DNA of 64,000 nucleotides, taken from contig SMSO01000014.1 in the NCBI GenBank assembly GCA_004764695.1, forward strand, positions 1,111,648-1,175,647, written 5' to 3'. Of this stretch, positions 39,094 to 55,010 are shown piece after piece. Numbering within the stretch: the first letter of the stretch is position 1; every line of letters starts with the position of its first letter. A model generated the notes under the pieces. It saw only the letters and a list, made by a program, of their open reading frames with translations. It was not told the DNA's origin and made no database searches. The DNA is from Schizochytrium sp. TIO01. Its lineage: Eukaryota; Protista; Bigyra: Labyrinthulomycetes. Position numbers and translations under genes: made by a program.

Positions 39094-40100
39094 ATGGAGC
39101 ACGCGCATTTGAAATTCTGGACACGCATGGCCTTAGCAGTTGTATATTCCGTGGTAGGCGCGTAAAGAGTCTCGGAGGAGGAAGATTGCGTGTCCGAAAA
39201 GGGCTTGTGGAATAAAAGACGGTGGCAGGCAAAGTTCATTTGGCGCTCCAGACAAAGCTAGCTCGTTTCACGCTGGAGGGCGGAAGCTGCTGCTTTCGCG
39301 TGTCTCGGGGCCGTTTATAGGTCGCTGCAGAAGACTTTAACGCCACCTTTCAGCTTCACCCCTGTTCTCGCCTGGCTTGCGCGGAGGCATTGGGCATCCG
39401 GTCGGAGCCGCTTTTTTGAAAAACTTTCTTCTCAGTTTCCTTGCGATTCTGCCGTCTTTTTTGTTAAACCATCACTCTGCTTCCTTCCTCTCTGTCCAGA
39501 TATACTCCTCTCTGCGTCTCGTTTCCTGTCCTTCTGGCGCTCCAAACGCGCAGACCACGAGACCTCCTGTGGCAACGGGGGCCTGCTCCGCTGGCTGCTG
39601 CTCTACGTCAGCACCTCCTCCGATCTCAAGGGCCAACTCTATTTAGGTAGGCTTTTCCTCTTTCCTTGTCTCCCCTGTATTGAGGTCCTCCGCGCCACCA
39701 ACGCGCGCAGAGCAGAAGTATCGAGGAGAAGCGTTAGAGCCTGGTTGCTGGTGAAGGTGTGGCAAGTGACAAAGGTTACGAGCAAGGCGTTGGCGGCAGC
39801 GCAGAGCTGACCCAAGCTGAGCCTGAAATAAAGGGGCGAGTGTTGGTTGTTGCTGTGAAGAGTCCTCGTACGAGCAGTGCAGAACACAACGTTTCGTGAT
39901 CAGCAAATTGCGTTGCGGCTGATCATTGTTGGGCCAAATTGTTTGGCTGGTTGATTTGTACTAAGCCTTTGAAACTCCAGTGATCTTCGCCTGAATAGAT
40001 TTGGGATCTATTGCTTGATACGGTCCGTATCGCCCAGCGCGCGGAGCGCTGCTGCGACTGCAGACTATTGTAGAAGCAGAGTTTTGAACAAGCACAAGAT

Positions 40101-43100
40101 ATGCAGGAGGCCGTAAGCGAGGCCGTTGCTCAGCTGCGCAAGGGCGCCAGCGAGGTGACGTAAGTATTCATTTTTGGGATTAAATACGCCCTAGCGACAC
40201 TACAAGATAACGGGTGGCAGGTGATCGATCATCTGGTGGAAGAAAACTTATGATAGACTAACAGAACAACTGCGGCATAATTCCACACATTGTATGGCAA
40301 ATTCATGTGAGCAAAATACAGTCTCGAAGGCTGCAGCATTGATCAGGAGAATGCCAAAGTCTTGGCGGAAGCAATCCAGCAATCGACCACATTAACTTGT
40401 TTGTTGTAAGTGAGAATCGGGAGGTCTGTGCAGGTATTCAAGCGCACCAATGTATATACTAACTTGTTGAAATTTTGCTTTCGTCATCGCTCATTACATA
40501 TCTACAGTCTCAATGGGAACGACATTGAAGATGATGCTTGCGATGCATTGACTCACGGTTTTGCACATAACACTTCGCTCACAAACCTCAAGTAAGTTTT
40601 CAACACCTGATGAATTTTTTATTTGTAAGTTTCTTTTATACTAATTCTTTTGGTATCGTGGTTTCGTGATACTGGCAGTCTTTATGGCAATGGTGTGAGC
40701 ATCCAAGCTGCTCGAAGAATTGCAGATGTCCTCAGGCATAACTCGACATTGACAAGTCTAGTGTAAGTTCCTAATCGAATGCAGGCTGCAAATGTGAACT
40801 CTTATTTGGAATCCATGAAGCTGACATCATCCTCACGATTGCTGTACTCAATAGGCTTGACCGAAACAATATTAATGCGGAGGCTGCTACGTCTCTTGCC
40901 GAGGCACTTAAGGAGAACGATTCTTTGACGAGCTTAGAGTAAGTTTTGGTGTCTCTCCTCGATGCTGTTTGTTTTTACGTTTTGCTATTGTTCAGGTCCT
41001 AACGTAATGGTTCTTCAATATGAATTTTTCATTGTCACAGTCTTGAAGATAATGATATCGGGTCCGTAGGCGCCTCCTCACTTGCTGGGGCGCTTACACA
41101 TAATCATCTTCTACTCACGCTTGTGTAAGTTTTGATTTTTTTAGCATGCACCTTACACGTATGGTACTGACGATGTTCTTATATTTTTATCTCCGTATGC
41201 ATTTTGGAGACACAGACTTGATAGTAACAGTATTACTGCCGAAGGTGTGACTGCTCTCGCTGAAGCATTAAAACACAACACGAGCTTAACAACACTCGAG
41301 TAAGTTTACCACCAAGTTTCTGGTCTCGACGTCATTGTGGTTTCTGACATTATATGTGGTTTGAATACACTGGTTCATTTTGCTTAACAGTCTCGGAGCG
41401 AACACCACCAGTGATGCTGGCGCAATTGCCTTGGCAGATGCGTTGAAGCAGAATCGATCTCTCAAGACGCTAGTGTAAGTTTCCAAAGCCCAATCTCTTT
41501 AGAGTTCTCATGGATAACTAATAGGTCTCGTTATGATGCTTTATGTTTCATTTCTACAGACTCGACCGGAACAAAATTGGCATTCCTGGTGGCACTGCTC
41601 TTGCCGAAGCTCTAAAGCAAAACACTTCGTTGGCAAATTTGAAGTAAGTTTTTACAATATGGAAACACAAAACAGATTATTGTGCGAAGAAACTAACTCG
41701 AAAGTAAATTTCATTCTGGTGTGTAGCATTCGCGGTAATGCCATTGGAGTACCTGGGGCGATCGCCTTTTCTGAGGCCTTGAAGCAGAACACATCTCTCA
41801 CCAATCTGTTGTAAGTTTTTTATTGTTTTTTTTTTGCATTTCTTCAAATGTTGATTTACTAACTGCGTTTGTTCTGGTTTTGATTCTGTAACATAGCCTC
41901 TGGTCGAATAGCATCGGGGACACTGGAGCCTCAGCTCTTGCAGATGCTCTAAAGGTTAACCGGACGCTGACCAACCTATTGTAAGTTAAAATTGTATTGG
42001 TCAGATATTCTTGAATTGGTATCTTTACCACGATGTGTGATGAAATATGTCTAACAACAGAAACACAATTGAACTCTTGCAGTCTCTCGTGGAACCAGAT
42101 CACCGACGTAGGCGCCAAAAAGCTTGCAAGCGCGTTGAAGAGGAATAACGTGCTAACCAACCTTGAGTAAGTTCCAATAATACATTCTAGGCTTGATCTA
42201 AGCAAGGACGTATATGCTAACATTTAGCTTACCATAATATTCACAGTCTTGCATTTAATGAAGTCCGGGCAGAATACTATTCTAGAATTAACGCGTATCT
42301 TGAGCGTAATAAGCAGCACACCCTGAGTATCGAGGACGACTCATCAGGAAGCTCAGGGTCAGGTACTAGCTCGGAAGCACACAGCCACTTGAATGCGTTC
42401 TCGGACTCTGACATTCAACTTCTTGAAGGATGGAAGTCTCGTCAAGTTGGCAATCCATTGGCTAGTCTCACGAGGCCCGAAGAACTGTGTCAACAAATTG
42501 CAGAAAAGCGCACGGTCTTTGAGCGGATGCAAGATCAAATTCGCGATTCGCAGGTAGGGGATGTTGCACTTCGTGATGCCGTTCGCGCTGAGCTTATTCA
42601 ACTGTTGCGCGAGGCTCTCTCTATCAACCTTGAACAATGCATTGCACAGGCTAACCAGAAGTTGAATAACGAACTCCGTGCACGTGTCTCGAGACGTCTT
42701 CATGAATTGCATGCTGAGGGTAACGAAAGCCACGACGTGGCCTTTGAACACGTGCACGATGGAGTTGCTGCTGCTCTCCGTGTTATTTCGGAATGGAAGC
42801 AACGACACAACAACTCTTCTGGGTGGCCTGCCGAGTCAGATCGGAGTGATGAGACCATACTTTTAGACTCTGAAAAGTCTCCTGAGGCAAATGACCCTGT
42901 AGCAAACCAACCAGAAGACAGCCAAGACAGTGGCCATGATTCAGAGCCCCCTCGCACCGAACTGGAAGATGCCAACACTGTGTTCAAGCAGGGTGTTGCT
43001 ATCTTCCAAGGTGATGGAGTGTCTGGTGACGCGCCTTGGAAGGAGGTTCAAAAGGCATTGGCCCTTATTGACTCCTTCTACAAGCGCACCGTTGCTGCAC

Positions 43101-44986
43101 TGTTGCTGCGTTTGAGAACCTCGTTTGCAGATTTTCACAAACTTCTCAGCTTCATTGCTCAAGGTGCGACTCCACCTGACTCTTCATGTCTTGAAGAAAT
43201 GTTACGACAACTAAAGGTGGAGCGTCGCAAGCGTGATCGTCTTTGCTTGGACTTGAAAGATGTGAAGGAGGATATCTTTGATGCTGGCTCAGATGCTGAG
43301 CGGGATCGTCTTAACGCTAAGATTTGGGAACTCGAAGCCCAAGTCCGGGAGATTGATCTGCACAAACTTGACCGCAAGGCGCGTCAGGCACGTGCGCGCT
43401 TGCTCCGGGCTGCGCAAGATCATTACCCAGAGCTCTTGTGGGATCAGGACTGGTGTCGCAGGATTGGCATCTCAGATCAGGCGTTTCTGGAGGTTAGCTA
43501 CCTAGGCCTGTGGCTTGAGGGAACTCGTGCTGTGGACTTTGAGACTGTCCGCAGCCTGTCCTCTACAAATGGTAAAGTTGTTCTTGCTGTGAAGAATGCC
43601 CAAGGAGAAAATCTTGTTCTGAAAAAGTTTCCTCTGGCAGAAGAGCGTGGGAGCAGCCGATTTTGTCGACAGGTTGCCGCCCTTGCTGTTATAAACTCGG
43701 CACATGTCATTCGCATCACTGGCCTGTTTATTGACCATGACGAAAGTATCAGTCACGGTTGCATTCTCATGCCCTACTATCCTCAAGGGGACTTAGCTTC
43801 TTGGATTCTACAGAACGCTCATGCAGATGAAGAGACATGCAAACGTATCGCAATTGGCGTACTTTCGGGAATTCACGATCTGCATAAATGTGGTCATGTC
43901 CATTGCGATATTAAACCAGCCAATATTTTCTTAACGTCAAGTCTCTCGCCAGTGATTGGAGATTTTGACGGTGTACAGCAGGCTAACAGGACTATGACTC
44001 ATTCATTGCAAGTTACGTGGAACTACATTGCACCCGAGATTCGGTTTGGGGGTCTAGACAAGGTGAGCGAAAAGGTAGATTTGTACTCCGCGGGCGTTCT
44101 GCTCGAGGAATTGTTTCCTCGGCCACGCAAGTCTATGCGGCAGCTCATCATCAAGCTTAAAAGCGAAGATCCTGCGGAACGTCCCAGTGCGCTTGATGCA
44201 CTCCAGCACCGTGCGTTCAACACCAAACCTGTGAGACTTCGGTCGTGTATTATCTGCCTTGATAATCTACCAGCTCCACATGGTGTGACATGTCGTGGCA
44301 GCCACTTTGTCTGCAAAGATTGCGTCACTGGATCTGTGGAGGCTGCCTCGCTTCCTGAGACTTCTGTCAAGGTAACTAGGGATGGCACAATGCAGTGCAT
44401 GTCACCAAATTGTGATCATATCATTTCAGGTGCTGATATTGCTCGTCAGGTACCACAAGAGTCGTTCGACAAGCTTATCAAGATTGTGCGAGAGCATATG
44501 GAACGAGATGTTTCAATTTCCCAAGAACGTGAGGTTCAGCGAAGGGTTCAGGAGGCCCTTTTTATGGACGGTCTGAATAGAGATACCGAGAGGCACTTGC
44601 GTCACATTCAAGATCGCATTCTTTGCACATGTTGCCCTCGCTGTCATACAGTGTTTGATACGTTCAATGGTTGTTGCGCTCTCAAATGTAGCAACAGCCG
44701 TTGCAAATGTCGATTTTGTGCATGGTGTCTTGAGGACACTGGAAGTTCTACTCAGGCATGTCATAGACATGTTGCGGATTGTCCCAAGAACAATAGCAAG
44801 GAGCACGACCCTTATTTTCCAGCAAGCTTTGAGATTGTTCAGCAAGCTTGGATTCGCGTGCGTGCTGAGCGTTTGCTAGATTATTGGAAACGAGAGATCC
44901 AGACTGAGGAGCTTCAAAATGTTCTTCGTGAGCGCCTGGCGCCTTTGTTGACGCCAGATGTTGTAGGCGAAGGCTTCATACTATAA
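40101..44986 (+). CDS. LRR (RI/NLRC3-type, 11 full repeats plus cap) - helical/coiled coil - non-RD protein kinase - RING - Rcat/RING2-like protein; 13 exons, ~1240 aa
   Basis: Exons 40101-40159, 40322-40405, 40508-40591, 40679-40762, 40855-40938, 41041-41124, 41216-41299, 41391-41474, 41560-41643, 41727-41810, 41897-41980, 42083-42166, 42247-44986. The total is 3723 nt with an open frame, and all 12 donors are gtaagt with YAG acceptors. Kinase at ~43538-44218 (VLKK, HCDIKPANIF, GDFD, YIAPE, DLYSAG); C3HC4 RING at 44246-44413; CPRC..GCCALKC..C..FCAWC..H..C at 44633-44782. Confidence 0.92.
40322..42166 (+). repeat. Array of eleven 84-nt single-LRR exons separated by 83-102 nt phase-2 introns
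   Basis: Each exon encodes LxxNxIxxxGAxxLAxALxxNxxLxxL(x), e.g. LDRNNINAEAATSLAEALKENDSLTSL and LWSNSIGDTGASALADALKVNRTLTNL. Confidence 0.93.
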
Positions 44987-45768
44987 ACTTGTGTAAAACA
45001 AATTTAATTATGTAGGTAGTTGTTGATATGATTTAATAATATTCACTAAACCTTTTTTCTTTTGTCGTCATTTTTTTATTATTAAATTGGTATGTGTCTT
45101 TTGGGGGTCATTTGTAATGCTAGGTATGAGTTTTCTCTCTTTTAAAAAAAATCCAGGTATGTAGCTTTGAAAGTGTTTCCAGAGAGAAACGCGAGTAACA
45201 ATACAAATGACCATCAAACGTCCTTACCTTTTATTACAGAAAATACAAACACGGAATTCACGACCCTCGCACATAGCATTAGAAAGAAAAAGAAATGCGT
45301 CACGCAGCCCATGATGCTAATGAACTAGTGCTATCAACATTGACATTACTTGACGCATTTGAAAACATGTTCACCTTAGTGTTGGTATCTCAATTTTTTT
45401 AATATTTGAATTGCTCTATTCGATTTCAACCAGCAGCGATCGATTACCTGAGCTTGAATTCTCTGTTTTATCGATGACTTTTTGCGAAATAAAAAAAGAT
45501 CGCATTGTCCTATATGAAACATTTAGATTTTGGTGCTTTTTACATGGTCAATAAAGGACACTATTTTCATGTAGATAGAAACTATAGGTAAAGTCATGCA
45601 AAAGCTTTATAGTTTTCGAAAAAGCAAAACAAAACCAAACCTCTTTATCTATATACTAATTCTCATTTCTCTCTACAGTTGAGCGATTTAAATGTTTCGC
45701 CACAATATTCAAGCTGAAAATCGTTCATAACTTTTGGATGAACTTATTTATAAAATTCAAGGATAAGT

Positions 45769-46455: not shown

Positions 46456-46791
46456 CTATTTTTTCATGGTGGGCTGGAGAATGGGGGAGTCCTTGAGGGA
46501 TTCCATGAGCTCAATCTCGTCCTTGGCCTGGAGCAAAAGCTCCTCAATCTGGCCACAGTCAATCTCCTTCTCGATCTGCTCCTCATCCTCGTACTTCTCC
46601 ACAACGCTGAGGCGGTAGTTGGTGATCTGCTCCATGCTCTCACGGTATGGCACGCCAGACGGGATGGTCTTGAGCTTGTCAAGAGTCTCCTTGTAGGTCT
46701 CAATCAGCACCTGGCGAGCATTCTCCACCACGGGCACGCCCACAATACCAGTGGACCGCTTGGCGGCCATGAGCACACGAGAGGCGAGCAT
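46456..46791 (-). CDS. NDUFA5: NADH dehydrogenase (ubiquinone) 1 alpha subcomplex subunit 5 (B13)
   Basis: STGIVGVPV..AR..L...Y..TL..L..IP....YR...EQIT..RL..V......IE..IDCGQIEELL.QA.DE; ATG at 46791. Confidence 0.95.
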   Translation of the reverse strand: MLASRVLMAAKRSTGIVGVPVVENARQVLIETYKETLDKLKTIPSGVPYRESMEQITNYRLSVVEKYEDEEQIEKEIDCGQIEELLLQAKDEIELMESLKDSPILQPTMKK

Positions 46792-49754
46792 TTTGTCTGG
46801 TTTTCTCACAGAAACTATACCTTACCTCCAAATCACCACCCTGGTACCTCTCGTCAAGCCCAACTTTCCACGCCGACGTATCCACCTTTGCGCAGCAGCC
46901 CTTCGCCACGCACTCAATCGCTTCTACTCCTCCTGCTGCTCCTCTTCTCCTCACGTCCTCTCTCTTTCTCCCTTCCTCTCCTTATTACTCCTATCATTTA
47001 ATTTAACTATTCTCTCCCTTAGACATTCCTTCATATATCATTCATCTCTTCCCCGCCCTATTCTCACACCTAATACATACATACAGAAATGAATAATATA
47101 CATACATACATACATACAAACATACATTCACCTGTACGATTTACAGATAATATTCATACGTGCACGAGTGAAAGTATTTATTTAGGACTACACATCACAG
47201 TATTTTTATGCACTTTGCTTCTTCAGCAATGAATCAATGATTGAATGAATCAATGAATGAGTAGATGAATAGATGAATGAGTAATCGAGCACAAATACAG
47301 TGAGCGCACGATAAACCATCACACTCATTATGTATTTATTTATTATTCACGCATTGTCTCTGCATACCCTGCCTCTACCTTAAATACCCACCTTATATTC
47401 GCTTCAGGGCAGCAGCAGCCAAACCTAACCGAGCCGCAGCCAAACCTAACCGGCTAGCGTGGCAGCTGTTCTTTGGTGGTGTTCTACTGTAGCGGAGGAG
47501 TCGAAGAACACCTCTGCGGCAGCGGAAGGGGAATGCGGGGAACTGGCAGGGGCCAGGCTTTAGGAGAGTGATACGAAGGCCAACGCGGTAACTCAACAGG
47601 CTGAATTTTGAGAAAAAAACTTGACACCAAGGTGCGCAGGGTGCGCAGACATGAGAACGTGGATTTAGGTTGTGATGGATGGAGTGGAGAAGGTTTGGTT
47701 GACGACAAGGAGGATTGCTTAATGATTGCCTCCTTGATGTGTTTGTTTTCTAAAAGACGTTTGCTTTTAAATTCAAGCTTCCTCAAGATTGATAAATCCC
47801 GGTCTTTTTACCAAGGCTTGGACTGTGTCGAAATCAACCTAAACTTTATTTAGCCTCATTTGCTGCGATAGAGTCAATTATAAACTAGATTCAAGGTTAT
47901 CATATGTTCATATGTGTCTTTTCAGTCACAATTACAAATTCCACCGGAAGTTGCTAGCTCATCAAGAAAATTTAACTAGATAGGAGCTTGAGTACTTCAT
48001 CAGATCAGTTCAGTGACTGGAGCTGTGTTCTATACGAGGGTTTAAATATAGAAATGACCTGGATTTCCGGCACAAGACGATGTGTAAACTGTTTGAAAAT
48101 ACCTTATGAGAAACAGTATTGCATGAGGGATGCTTTCGGATCGTTCATCTGGCCCTTGCCTGTGACATCTTCAACCAGTTCTTGAAAAAAGCATCACCGT
48201 GAGAGGATGGGGAGATTAGGATCTTGCTTGAGTGAGTCCAACAATATTCGTTTTCTTCAATAGGGCCTTTCCAGATGGCTTAAATCTTCGATAATTTATC
48301 CTGCGATAATCACTGAGCAGATATATTCTCTCCACTAAATGCTAAGTCATTCGATTTGACTTGGAGCTGAAGAACGTGCACCGTCTTCGATCACAGCTCG
48401 GGTATCATAAGACCTACACCGGCGACATTGGGAAAAGATACGAATTGGTGACAAGTTTTAGATGATCTCATCGACTGCGTTGTAAATTAAAATCCAATCC
48501 CTATATGCTCTCAAATCTACCAAAGTTGAGCCCTACAACTTAGATATTCCATTAACTCATATGCTTAGGTCTCGGGACTACGAAGCCCCAGAGTGCACAT
48601 TATGTAATCTGTGCCTGCTCGATTAATCGGTCGATACCTATGCACACGCAAATTCAATTAAGACATGAACATCTAAATTGGACATGGTTTTGGCTATCGA
48701 TTTTGATGGCTAATCTTCAAGATCCCAAGTCCCAGTTTTTGCAGTGTTACAACATTTACTTCGAAGATGCCCATGCATACTTAGTAGTCCTATTGTCGCC
48801 ATGATCTGCTACGTCAGGTCTATGACGCAGATCTGCGCCGCGTTTATGGTTTATGTCCGCCCGAGAATAATTTTCTTTCCGTACTTCCTACATAGGAAAA
48901 TACTATATGGGTGCCTTACTTCATCTTACTTACCAGCAAATTCACAGAGTACCTATATCCTTTTAAAAAATAATATTTTAAAATATGAGAAAAAAACGTA
49001 TCTAACAAAAGGCAGACTGATATTCACGCGCTCAAAATAGATAGCCAAATCGTTATCCACAAGTTCTCGAGTTGCTGCTTTGCGCGTGTCTTTGAAGGCA
49101 GTGTATAGCACTGGTGGAGCTTTGTTCCTTCCTGGCTTCTTGTCTTCAACTTGCTTCATTTCCCTTACATTGCTTCCTCCTCTATCCCTCAAGCCTCGAG
49201 CCTCAAGCCTCAAGCCGAGTGTTTCTTGGGCATGAATGAACGATTGCAATTTAGCTTTGCCAATTAGTGGTACCTGTACTTCCTATTCGGCCCTAGTCCC
49301 CTTCGCTCCTCGTCTTCTTCACTATTTTTCATATCCTAGCTTTCACTAGCTATTGCCATTTATTTATTTATTTATGAGACTTTTCGCTTCAAGTTTATTT
49401 TATCTCCCCAAACAATCATACTTTCAATGCAATAAACTTTAACTTTTGGTTTTTTATTTTAAAGAAAAGGTTTAAAAAGGATACCGATGACCCACTCGCA
49501 CAAACGCATCCTCATCATCAGCCAACTTGAACCCACTCGAAGCCTCATAATAGCCACCCTCCCAGAGCGACCTAGAGGCCGAAAACCCTCGCAAGATTCG
49601 AAGCAACGCCACTCTATGGCCTGTTTGGACAAGTTCCCGGCATCGTCTTCGGCATTGCACAAAGTTTCTTTCCAACGAAGGAACTTGTTTGCGACCGTCA
49701 TCGCTCAATCGTTCATCTTTCTCATTACATGACCAACACACGTGCGATTTTGAC

Positions 49755-52226: not shown

Positions 52227-54104
52227 GACATTGGCGTTGTTTTGGCTTTAGCTTTTGCTTTTTGCTTCTTCTCTCAAAAGACTCAGCAATAAAAGAGTCG
52301 TCTATGTCCTACTACCGCTACTCCTACCATAACTGCATCTACTCTTACCCTGCACATTACGCATGCGCAATGAATTACCTCTTGCGAGGCCTAGCATTTG
52401 GACTATGTGGGGTGCTATCAGAGCTGTTGATGAACAGCCTTCTTTCTCTGGCGGGGTGCTATGTGCCTCATAACGTTAACCATAGTACCAGTCCCCAGCC
52501 ACCGCATGTGTACTTGGCGATGGTCTTGATAGATAAAGATTATGTACTATGTATTTAGGAACCTCCTATCGCCATTAGAGTGCAATATGAAGTTGCTGTG
52601 AATCTGTGACGCACCGCTTCTTTCTTTCCCTCTTATGTGATTGTGTATTTGTTTGACATGATCACTCAATTAATTGTTCATTCATTCATTTATTCAATTA
52701 GCTATTCATTCACTTATTTTTAATTATTTCAACATTTAGTCATGAGTTGTTTATGTTTTACATTTTAAACTAAAACAACGTTTGCTCTCAATGTCTTTCT
52801 TGAGCTGCTTTTGGTGAAAGGAGAGCGACAGGAGATAATAAGAGAACAAACCAAAGGGTTCTCCGGCTTCCGCTTCTACTAATCTAATCTTGCAGTCCCT
52901 ATCCTTGCCTCTTTTTGACGAGGCACTCGAACATTACAAAGTTGGAGCTGTTTTCTCTCAGGCGAGGGTCATAATCACACACTCGCACATTCACAAGAAA
53001 GATAGATCTGCACAGCGGGTTAGCGCTGGGTTTATAGAAATGATGGTCGACGCTCAGTCTTGTCTTGTCTGGCTTTGGGCAAAGGAATCACTATGTGCGT
53101 ACAAACATACGTACGTAGCGACCGCGATTGCTCGACGATAATCGATAATCTAAATAAAGGTGATTGATTGCTCTTCGTTGCTTCTCTCTCTTTTTTTTTA
53201 TTTTATTTTATTTTTAACTAAAAATGTTTTCACCTAAAATGAAAAGTTAATCATTCTTTTGAAAAAGAAAAGTTTGAAGTCAGAAGTTATCAACTTTTTA
53301 AAGAAGGAAAGAGCTTAAAACAAAAGTGGCAAAAGAAGAGGAAGTCAATCGGTCGATCAATCGATCCGTGCAGACCGCCAAGCTTGCGCTCTGGCCGGCA
53401 CAGGCTCGGAGGAGACGCCACGGCGTACCTCCCCGCCCTCGCCGCAGACGCCTGATCCCGCCGCCTCCCACTGGCCCTCTGCGTCGGTCGGCGCTTCGGC
53501 TTTGGTCTTTCCGTTCGACCAGACAGACAGACAGACAGACAGAGAATAATTAACAACGACAGCCAATTTAGGAATAAGCAACCTCAATCCGGATCTCTCG
53601 GGCGCTCGGGCTCCCGCCTCGCCTCTCGCTCCGAGACAAACACCTCAGGGCGAAACCCTCTTCGCAGGACTTCGACCCGTTGTCCACGTCAGGCCGCCGC
53701 TAGAACCTCTGGCCAAGGGCCCGCCGCCTGCCTGGAATACAGCGAGGGCGGTCCGCTTGCGCCTCCCGAGAGCGCCACGCTGCGCGAACAGGGCCTCCTC
53801 GTTGGCGGTTCTCTTAGGCTTTACAGTAGGAGTTCGGTAGGAGTCACTGTGGCAAGGTACTGGTAGGAGGACTGGCTGCTGCTGGATACAGCGGAAAAGC
53901 AGAGGTCATTGACAAACTTGTTGAGACTGTATTGCACTGCGTAGCTTGCTTTGCGAATCGCAAGGCTCAGGCTGTGCTTTGCGAATCGAGAAGCTTTGAG
54001 CCACTCAAATTGCTTCCCTGATTGATTCATTGATTCGTTGATTGATTGTTTTGGAACTCTGGAATCACTTGGACTGGGATAATTCGAAAAGCGAACAAGC
54101 AAAC

Positions 54105-55010
54105 ATGGGTGACGCAGGTGTATCAGCGTTTACGTCTGGCCTGGTGGCCGGCATGACGAGCTCGTTTGTGTTCTCACCAGTTGATAGGGCACTGTTTCTG
54201 TCACATGTACATAAAAGACCGTTTCTGTGTGAGTCAAACTTCGAAAAACCATTTCAAAGCGTTAACATGGTCATGTTGCAAAGAGTTATTTCATCAGGAC
54301 TGTGTTTTCCCTTGGAAGATGCAGTGCGCAGACGCTGCCCTGTCGGTGAGCGGAGCTCTTTCACACACAACTTTGTTTCCGGCACTGTTTCTGGATCCCT
54401 TATCGCAATCGTCACCAACCCACTGGCAAGTATCACCTTTCAGAAATGGAGCGCACAACACCCAGGAGGTATGATTCGCGTAGCATCAATAATGTTTCAA
54501 ACTGGTGGAATCGCTTGCTTCAACCGCGCCATTTTCACAACTCTTGCCAGGGACTTTATTTGGGGCGGAGCATTCTCGTGCCTGCGCCATGAACTCCCGA
54601 AACATCTCGCAAGGAGTCAGCAACCCCTTGTGGACCCCAATACTGGCGTGCAACTTGCTGGAGCAGTATCTTTCTTCTCCAACGTCATTGCCGCTGCCGT
54701 TGCAACACTCATATCGTCTCCCTTCAACTATGCTCGCAACCTACAGTATGCGCATGATCTCTCTCGGGGTCACTTGAGCACAACAGCTGTCTTTCGCAAC
54801 CTCTGGAGGGAAGCTCAGGAGAACAAGCTCAACACGCAGGAAAGCCGCGCATCATTTCTTGCGCGGCGTCTCACGATCGGTTGGGGAACTCTTCGTGTCT
54901 CTGTCGGCATTGCTTTCTCTAGTCAAATCTACAACCTGCTCATGGCTGAACTCTCTTCATCCAGAACAGCTGCATCCGGGTCTGCATCCCCCTCTTCTGC
55001 TGCAGCATGA
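54105..55010 (+). CDS. Mitochondrial carrier family (SLC25) protein, divergent
   Basis: Three-repeat structure: SGLVAG..FSPVDRAL, SGTVSG..TNPLASIT, AAAVAT..SSPFNYARN. About 300 aa from ATG 54105. Confidence 0.85.
   Translation: MGDAGVSAFTSGLVAGMTSSFVFSPVDRALFLSHVHKRPFLCESNFEKPFQSVNMVMLQRVISSGLCFPLEDAVRRRCPVGERSSFTHNFVSGTVSGSLIAIVTNPLASITFQKWSAQHPGGMIRVASIMFQTGGIACFNRAIFTTLARDFIWGGAFSCLRHELPKHLARSQQPLVDPNTGVQLAGAVSFFSNVIAAAVATLISSPFNYARNLQYAHDLSRGHLSTTAVFRNLWREAQENKLNTQESRASFLARRLTIGWGTLRVSVGIAFSSQIYNLLMAELSSSRTAASGSASPSSAAA

Follow-up and report, generated by a model that had tools for sequence, protein, structure and literature searches.

A candidate leucine-rich repeat, kinase and RBR-like ubiquitin ligase protein encoded in one chain by Schizochytrium sp. 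TIO01

Introduction

Ubiquitin ligases of the RING-between-RING (RBR) type pass ubiquitin from the conjugating enzyme (E2) to their own cysteine and from there to the substrate, and they are autoinhibited. One of them, parkin, is activated by PINK1 phosphorylation. Here we describe a gene from a 64,000-nt stretch of the Schizochytrium sp. TIO01 genome (contig SMSO01000014.1, positions 1,111,648 to 1,175,647), which we call the window. Its 1240-residue product appears to join a leucine-rich repeat (LRR) array, a helical region that may pair two chains, a protein kinase and an RBR-like ligase module lacking the in-between-RING (IBR) domain. We give a probability of roughly 60% to the reading in which the kinase controls this ligase and the LRR array serves as the input. 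All four kinds of domain are known, and what is new is the IBR-less RBR variant hard-wired to a kinase and a sensor.

The closest comparison is with the RBR ligases RNF216, parkin, HHARI/ARIH1, HOIL-1 and HOIP. The module shares with them the RBR fold of RING1, the cysteine spacing of HHARI and a conserved candidate catalytic cysteine, and by analogy the same relay and autoinhibition would apply here. Unlike in these ligases, helices stand in the place of the IBR, an alanine lies two residues after the candidate cysteine, and a second histidine is conserved (His1167/His1169). The module is also fused about 11 residues after the kinase, has its own C-terminal helices and is matched by no Pfam model. 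The PINK1-parkin pair likewise couples a kinase to an RBR-type ligase, and one relative of our protein (P0052) adds a ubiquitin-like domain. However, PINK1 and parkin are two proteins in animals, whereas here there is one chain; its kinase is no relative of PINK1, and no mitochondrial targeting is evident.

Other described proteins combine parts of this architecture. LRSAM1, built as LRR, coiled coil, SAM and RING ligase, with the LRR proposed to pick the target, resembles it in having a cytosolic LRR, a helical or coiled-coil region and a C-terminal ubiquitin ligase in one chain, but it lacks a kinase, contains a SAM domain and its RING is plain. Arabidopsis KEG (RING, kinase, ankyrin and HERC2-like repeats) also unites a kinase, a ubiquitin ligase and a repeat domain in one polypeptide; its domain order is reversed, its RING is a plain RING-HC, and it has neither an LRR nor the catalytic RING2-like (Rcat) domain of RBR ligases. 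In the bacterial IpaH/SspH ligases the LRR gates a cysteine-thioester ligase (NEL). They share the joining of a substrate-binding LRR to such a ligase, but the NEL catalytic fold is unrelated, there is no kinase, and they are secreted effectors. ROCO/LRRK kinases (LRRK2, Dictyostelium Roco) combine an LRR with a kinase in a single cytosolic chain, together with a Roc-COR GTPase that is missing here, and have no ligase. Nucleotide-binding LRR receptors (NLRs) and other STAND proteins are similar in their presumed sensor of ribonuclease inhibitor (RI)/NLRC3-type LRRs and their large genomic families; our protein differs in having no NACHT, NB-ARC or P-loop and an enzymatic output (kinase and ligase) instead of adaptor domains. 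Plant-type LRR receptor kinases differ as well, since a simple scan found no signal peptide or transmembrane helix here. Within the limits of the library that we searched, no paper was found on an LRR-kinase-RBR or kinase-RBR family, in agreement with the original prediction for this locus, which did not recognise the architecture from any described family.

Results and discussion

The C-terminal module resembles RBR ligases

In the family alignment, the C-terminal 251 residues contain two invariant sets of cysteines and histidines. The first belongs to RING1 (residues 995-1052, 44246..44419; like all features of the gene, on the + strand), which we delimited by the invariant ligands and by fold comparison. 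Its eight C3HC4 ligands (C995, C998, C1010, H1014, C1017, C1020, C1045 and C1050) do not vary within the family, and in 133 distant representatives their conservation is 91-98%. An AlphaFold2 (AF2) model of the module reached a mean confidence (pLDDT) of 81.7. When we searched with this model by Foldseek, the matches were all RBR ligases, with RNF216 as the best (E 1.5e-3, probability 0.99), and the top 38 contained no exception. VIA-align placed module residues 1-93 on RING1 of RNF216 with a Z score of 10.6 (root-mean-square deviation 2.3 Å over 85 residues), and also on RING1 of parkin, RNF144A, ARIH2, HOIL-1 and HOIP. The Z scores were 6-8 for parkin, ARIH2, HOIL-1 and HOIP, and at most 4.4 for plain RINGs. 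The C3HC4 RING that had been predicted is thereby supported by its ligand spacing, and its modelled fold points to the RBR-specific form of RING1.

RING1 is followed by a helical insert in the place of the IBR (residues 1053-1120, 44420..44623), modelled as helices 67-73, 76-111 and 117-131 in module numbering. His1111 within it is invariant only in the close family.

The second set of ligands marks the putative Rcat (residues 1124-1173, 44633..44782), which was placed by profile alignment and conservation. It comprises a first group of C1124, C1127, C1142 and C1147 and a second of C1152, C1155, H1167 or H1169, and C1173, in the spacing C-x2-C-x9-C-x4-C-x4-C-x4-C-x2-C...H-x-H-x3-C. The third cysteine of this pattern, Cys1137 (codon 44672-44674), is the candidate catalytic residue and is 98% conserved in the 133 distant representatives; the zinc ligands are conserved to 95-100%, and Cys1142 to 100%. 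The family profile aligned without gaps to RING2 of Ariadne-1/HHARI (1wd2, E 9.4e-4; 2m9y, E 3.1e-3) and less well to that of parkin (0.11). The profile match and the invariant spacing bear out the predicted RING2-like domain, which we read as a probable Rcat with two linear zinc sites and a catalytic cysteine. By analogy with known RBR ligases, we infer that Cys1137 would form the ubiquitin thioester. The resemblance to an RBR ligase holds for RING1 and Rcat; with no IBR between them, the module is better called RBR-like than canonical. It ends in C-terminal helices (residues 1189-1240, 44828..44983) that were seen in the model and carry conserved W, R, RL, YW and LL.PD motifs in the family alignment.

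The kinase is atypical and probably active

The protein kinase domain (about residues 769-987, 43568..44224), delimited by Pfam, PDB alignments and a residue check, had likewise been predicted. Pfam Pkinase matches residues 769-951 with E 4.6e-31 and 108.6 bits against a cut-off of 31.7. The PDB alignments and the residue check show that Lys787, Asp882, Asn887, Asp900 and the Ala923-Pro-Glu motif are retained. The catalytic loop reads His880-Cys881-Asp882, which makes it a non-RD kinase, and Asp900-Phe-Asp902 (DFD) replaces DFG. The domain falls outside any clear kinase group. Its best solved relative is 9gmp_A, a 'Map kinase kinase-like protein' (2.5e-15), followed by Snf1, IRAK4, JNK3, AMPK and MEK1 at about 1e-12. 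Of 41 related proteins that join this kinase to the module, 32 share DFD and 31 the non-RD motif, a sign that the active site of the kinase is under selection. Judged by its residues, the kinase is atypical and probably active.

One spliced transcript encodes the whole chain

The gene consists of 13 exons on the + strand, from the ATG at 40101 to the TAA stop codon at 44984-44986. The largest open frame listed on this strand covers 42389-44986; 5' of it lies a series of short frames, each of which ends in ...LT.L directly ahead of a GTAAGT. Queried with the large frame, the database yielded protein P0001 (1240 residues, from a 4357-nt contig), which is 100% identical across the queried part and has precomputed Pfam LRR and kinase matches. 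We obtained the exon map by in-script splicing of the window against P0001. The conceptual product is identical to it in 1239 of 1240 residues, with A315S as the sole difference. All 12 introns have GTAAGT donors and AG acceptors.

Exon 1 (40101..40159) encodes the start codon and N-terminal cap, residues 1-19 plus 2 nt; its joint 40159/40322 was found in three runs, and an in-frame stop 9 codons upstream bounds the start. Eleven internal exons follow (40322..42166), each exactly 84 nt long, in phase 2 and encoding one 28-residue RI-type LRR. They were located from the splice alignment, transcript contigs and Pfam LRR_6, start at 40322, 40508, 40679, 40855, 41041, 41216, 41391, 41560, 41727, 41897 and 42083, and are separated by introns of 80-102 nt. 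Exon 13 (42247..44986, 2740 nt) carries the capping LRR, the helical region, the kinase, the RING1-helix-Rcat module and the stop codon. The 3' untranslated region (UTR) extends over 44987..45059.

Transcript evidence came from contigs of public runs from three studies, aligned to 40001-45200. We took these runs to be RNA from their size, and this label is a guess. All 12 GT..AG joints were present at the predicted positions in contigs of the three studies' runs, and single contigs of 4625 nt (run X4) and 4586 nt (run X8) crossed every exon. The X4 contig ends in an unaligned A run at 45059, 73 nt past the stop codon. The same 1240-residue open reading frame (ORF) is present in the MMETSP transcriptome set. 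Exon-sized shares of the gene occurred in 18 RNA-sized runs; in all three runs aligned it was fully spliced, and no exon-skipping joint was listed among their contigs. Although the runs were labelled as RNA by a guess, we conclude that the gene is transcribed as mRNA because the introns are removed and a poly(A) tail is present. The gene is real and expressed as a single transcript.

The single frame of about 1240 residues that had been predicted is therefore confirmed by the exact exon map, by P0001 and by the MMETSP ORF. The check on RNA that had been proposed was passed with 12 of 12 joints, two full-length contigs and a poly(A) site. A gene-model artefact, or LRR exons and a large exon that belong to separate genes, which had been named as the outcome that would speak against the prediction, is ruled out by the single contigs through all exons, the poly(A) tail and the MMETSP ORF.

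Three minor observations concern the transcripts and records. Spliced contigs run 690-720 nt further upstream of 40001, so that either the 5' UTR exceeds 800 nt or the transcript of a divergent neighbour was merged. In run X1, short unspliced contigs lie over introns 1 and 5 (40130-40351 and 40909-41070) with a depth figure roughly one quarter that of the spliced contig, and may represent intron retention, pre-mRNA or DNA carry-over. The record of P0183 (MMETSP0960) bears the TAXON_ID 87120 of the fungus Rhizopogon burlinghamii, probably by a digit transposition of 87102 (Aurantiochytrium limacinum).

A cytosolic LRR array is linked to a helical region that may pair

From the N- to the C-terminus, the chain contains the LRR array, the helical region, the kinase, RING1, the helical insert, Rcat and the C-terminal helices. 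Pfam LRR_6 matched nine stretches of P0001 with E 1.4e-33. The 28-residue repeats follow the RI-type consensus LxxNxIxxxGAxALAxALKxNxSLTxL and vary mostly at positions 1, 3, 4, 6 and 8-10, which surround and follow the conserved Leu2, Asn5 and Ile7. After the eleven repeats comes a twelfth, degenerate capping LRR (residues 329-355, 42248..42328), recognised from the repeat register; its first residue, 328, is the codon split at the junction of exons 12 and 13. The predicted RI/NLRC3-type solenoid is thus well supported. Tandem Repeats Finder found no DNA-level tandem repeat in the array, and the LRR exons have a mean nucleotide identity of 0.49 to one another. By these sequence measures the array is old and settled. 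PF27087.1 was listed for P0001 only, the sole close family member that was returned with LRR matches.

Pfam gave no match to NACHT, NB-ARC or Roc, and the protein contains no Walker A motif or P-loop. No COR/Roc GTPase was matched by Pfam between the LRR array and the kinase, where the linker is all helix. In a simple hydrophobicity scan the N-terminus was hydrophilic and the top 19-residue window (Kyte-Doolittle 1.63) lay inside the kinase, on which grounds we rejected a secreted or membrane receptor. These null results agree with the predicted lack of signal peptide, transmembrane helix and NACHT/NB-ARC/ROC domain, and indicate a cytosolic protein without an NTPase switch.

The helical region (residues 356-760, 42329..43543) was modelled by AF2 as all helix (model m1a86b97ac5ef, pLDDT 72), with a three-helix bundle that was modelled confidently, disordered acidic stretches and, ahead of the kinase, long hairpins. 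Immediately before the kinase lies the motif HYPELL; A717, P722 and E723 are conserved. Pfam gave only noise on this region and the ESM Atlas no usable match. Foldseek and a wide VIA-align comparison found no specific fold but only generic hairpins and bundles, with Z scores up to 9.6 that are uninformative for helices. A homodimer model of residues 585-765 scored 0.40 against 0.01 for the best of 3 controls, with a partner pLDDT of at least 64 and agreement of the runs in at least 100% of contacts. In calibration, the homodimer mark was reached by 21 of 30 solved one-chain pairs and by none of 23 single chains (17 of 29 and none of 30 for eukaryotes). The predicted contacts lie on the helix of residues 641-673 (43184..43282), and those at 651, 655, 658, 659, 662, 666, 669 and 673 have heptad-like spacing. 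The model supports, but does not show, that the helical region pairs two chains. The coiled coil that had been proposed is therefore only partly established, by the all-helical region and these contacts, and the role as an oligomeriser has modest model support.

Kinase and ligase module form a conserved unit in protists

Word-based protein searches with the module alone or the helical region alone returned only the cluster of P0001 itself, which is not evidence of absence; with these searches no orthologue was found outside A. limacinum strains. An exhaustive search with the profile, over 1.84 billion representatives, gave 2768 matches at E <=1e-3 and 1393 clusters at E <=1e-10. The closest named relatives are from the thraustochytrid Hondaea fermentalgiana. 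In 80 of the top 150 relatives the module is preceded by 250 or more residues; about half of these (41 of 80) have the family kinase there, at a median distance of 11 residues from the module. The N-terminal partners vary, with LRR_6 in P0062 (in P0033 together with ANK), ankyrin in Hondaea, WD40 in P0008, PQQ-like in Durusdinium and ubiquitin-like in Polykrikos. This kinase adjacency and the varied partners lead us to regard the kinase plus RING1-helix-Rcat, on sequence grounds, as a conserved unit in protists whose N-terminal repeat domain is exchangeable.

In P0052 and P0180, transcripts of the dinoflagellate Polykrikos kofoidii, a ubiquitin-like domain precedes the family kinase and RING1-helix-Rcat, which combines the parts of PINK1 and parkin in one chain. 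Members without the kinase carry the module behind helicases, either of superfamily 1 (AAA_11/AAA_12) or DEAD/Helicase_C; examples are P0043, P0048, P0051 and P0057, with records from Phytophthora, Pythium and an insect, Pseudolycoriella. One distant helicase-linked member reaches Pfam IBR, and the helicase-linked module may be related to the known helicase-RBR subfamily.

The window gene is an old branch of an expanded family

We scanned the genome from which the window was taken (64.07 Mb in 37 contigs, the window being C13:1111648-1175647) and found 96 matches to the module. About 64 are full length, mostly in open frames of about 925 residues, which, with the varied partners described above, answers the proposed search for paralogue number and sensor/effector combinations. 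Among the thirty module copies that we compared, a large clade C, whose members are 56-100% identical, many above 85% in DNA, stands apart from an older clade A, which has a support value (SH-aLRT) of 98 in a quick tree. Clade A consists of the window gene (L001), L002, L003 and one MMETSP protein. For L002, too, an LRR exon lies upstream in the same orientation (C36:1722559). L001 is without a near-identical duplicate, its nearest paralogues in clade A being 45-46% identical, and by this comparison it represents an old branch with a single copy. Its neighbours are NDUFA5 (46459-46809, - strand) and a mitochondrial carrier (54042-55007, + strand). In this unique housekeeping context, carriage of the single-copy L001 by a mobile element was rejected.

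The differences between strains were mostly synonymous. Run X1 differs from the window by 4 synonymous changes and 1 non-synonymous change, and run X8 by 9 and 4; together the two strains have 13 synonymous and 5 non-synonymous distinct sites. The part encoding kinase and ligase accounts for 7 synonymous sites and 1 non-synonymous site (N1219T), and A315S is the only amino-acid change listed in the LRR region. This is the pattern of purifying selection, unlike that of a hypervariable receptor.

Many family copies are clustered or near contig ends, and some share 3' flanks. Among L010-L030, clade C copies with 85-100% DNA identity, the homology of most pairs stops about 76 nt after the stop codon, roughly the length of the 3' UTR, while L012, L013, L015 and L018 also have 1.5 kb of 3' flank in common. 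This points to a spread of clade C by gene-sized copying together with block duplication.

Proposed mechanism and what weighs against it

In the mechanism that we favour, the RI-type LRR solenoid would bind a protein or other ligand, and binding would alter the dimer geometry or relieve autoinhibition. The kinase would then phosphorylate in cis or in trans and turn on the normally autoinhibited RBR-type ligase, as PINK1 does with parkin. RING1 would recruit the E2 charged with ubiquitin, Cys1137 of Rcat would take over the ubiquitin as a thioester and hand it on, and the ligase would ubiquitinate the bound target or downstream proteins.

If this is true, RBR ligases gain a subfamily that needs no IBR and is firmly coupled to a kinase, and one polypeptide would be enough to study how phosphorylation is tied to RBR activation. 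The core, with its interchangeable sensors, occurs in lineages of at least two protist supergroups (the 1393 clusters at E <=1e-10), and its C-terminal module has no Pfam coverage. The conserved L001 would be a tractable reference member of the family.

Several points weigh against this reading. Pfam recognises nothing in the C-terminal 251 residues and gives only noise. The IBR is absent, and no conserved set of cysteine or histidine zinc ligands lies between residues 1052 and 1124. The residue two after Cys1137 is alanine (in 93% of relatives) and not the canonical RBR histidine; a conserved pair, His1167 and His1169, lies elsewhere in Rcat. The family profile also matches the RING of RNF4 with E 4.2e-5. 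The G-loop of the kinase reads SSTNGKV without two of its glycines and the αC glutamate is replaced by glutamine (RQV), so that the canonical set of GxGxxG, αC Glu and DFG is not present and the kinase could be weak or a pseudokinase. Finally, that the kinase controls the ligase, and not the reverse, is purely inferred.

Alternative roles and readings

What the protein senses bears on two alternatives, both of which we consider possible but less likely than not. According to the first, it is a cytosolic NLR-analogous immune receptor whose LRR senses a pathogen molecule, for example of a mirusvirus or bacterium, and whose oligomerisation fires kinase and ligase. The family is indeed large, and many of its copies are 85-100% identical, clustered and near contig ends. 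Its sensor domains are exchangeable, and the non-RD character of the kinase is a trait associated with innate-immune receptor kinases. The host carries persistent mirusviruses (PMC12606086); the same paper makes no mention of this family. L001, however, is single and old and stands among housekeeping genes. Its LRR has one amino-acid change and the array no DNA-level cassette turnover, the three runs in which it is spliced are not infection experiments as far as known, and an NTPase switch is missing. Going by these sequence features, an NLR-like immune role is plausible for the family as a whole and unsupported for the chromosome-internal L001.

The second alternative, which we hold about as doubtful, is a housekeeping regulator. 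The LRR would scaffold a cellular partner and the core would carry out phospho-dependent ubiquitination in quality control or signalling, as a one-chain PINK1-parkin. This would agree with the purifying selection, single copy and housekeeping neighbours of L001, with its occurrence in 18 RNA-sized runs and full splicing in the three aligned, with the parkin-like position of the ubiquitin-like domain before the same core in P0052, and with the wide distribution of the core in protists. On the other hand, the word-based searches gave no orthologue beyond A. limacinum strains, the nearest paralogues are distant, and recent family amplification is unusual for housekeeping genes. The original prediction had set a single-copy, slowly evolving, constitutively expressed gene with a known housekeeping role against its immune reading. 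L001 is single-copy, differs between strains mostly by synonymous changes and was spliced in all three runs, but no housekeeping role is known for it.

A broader proposal is more tentative than either of these. Protists (labyrinthulomycetes, dinoflagellates and others) might carry an unrecognised class of single-chain receptors in which an exchangeable repeat sensor (LRR, ankyrin or WD40) acts through a kinase on an IBR-less RBR ligase, as a self-contained phospho-ubiquitin switch of the PINK1-parkin kind, and which in thraustochytrids expanded into a non-NLR repertoire of innate recognition that attaches ubiquitin to its bound ligands. Very little is known of immunity in protists, and a large LRR-kinase-ligase family in a transformable mirusvirus host is a testable candidate system.

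We consider it improbable that the kinase is a pseudokinase that serves only as a scaffold or gate, which would make the protein in effect an LRR-targeted ubiquitin ligase. The degenerate G-loop, the αC glutamine found family-wide, DFD for DFG and HCD for HRD would fit such a role. Pseudokinases usually have lost one or more of the lysine, the catalytic aspartate, the asparagine, the magnesium-binding aspartate and APE, whereas here all of these are retained and conserved in distant relatives.

The least likely alternative, a tandem-RING ligase without a thioester step whose second zinc domain would be a plain RING of the cross-brace kind, could claim the better profile match to RNF4 than to Ariadne RING2 (9.4e-4) and the C-x-H-x2-C-x2-C at that site in many clade C members, but we rejected it because the would-be fourth ligand is unconserved (H, C, N, Q, A, S or G, with Cys in just 49%), while the conserved Cys1137 and Cys1142 have no role in any RING scheme. 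The RNF4 score moreover adds up two stretches, of 16.6 and 15.6 bits, from a tandem construct with two copies, and the RBR-type RING1 and the whole-module Foldseek matches also stand against a plain second RING. For these reasons of conservation we prefer the Rcat reading.

One-LRR exons elsewhere in the genome

The genome contains about 1968 candidate one-LRR exons; 150 were scored, all with E <4e-8. Many are arrayed near contig ends with 376-389 bp between exons, as at C30:1725180-1726012, C34:66098-66956, C33:2047463-2048313 and C35:2639335-2640570. The LORE-TEARS of Aurantiochytrium limacinum, which were described as non-coding spacers in the subtelomeres, likewise have a unit size of 376-389 bp (bioRxiv 10.1101/2023.06.15.545109). 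Downstream of most of the arrays there is no kinase-ligase module in the same orientation, from which it follows that other gene families also use one-LRR arrays.

About 20 clade C kinase-ligase genes have an LRR exon on the opposite strand 6-14 kb upstream, as counted from an incomplete list of LRR exons. Examples are C13:7216878(-)/C13:7226377(+), C34:2829332(-)/2838938(+), C34:2940039(+)/2931183(-), C5:1815490(-)/1825727(+) and C32:31822(+)/20115-22932(-). From this arrangement it seems that an LRR gene and a kinase-ligase gene recur together as a head-to-head unit.

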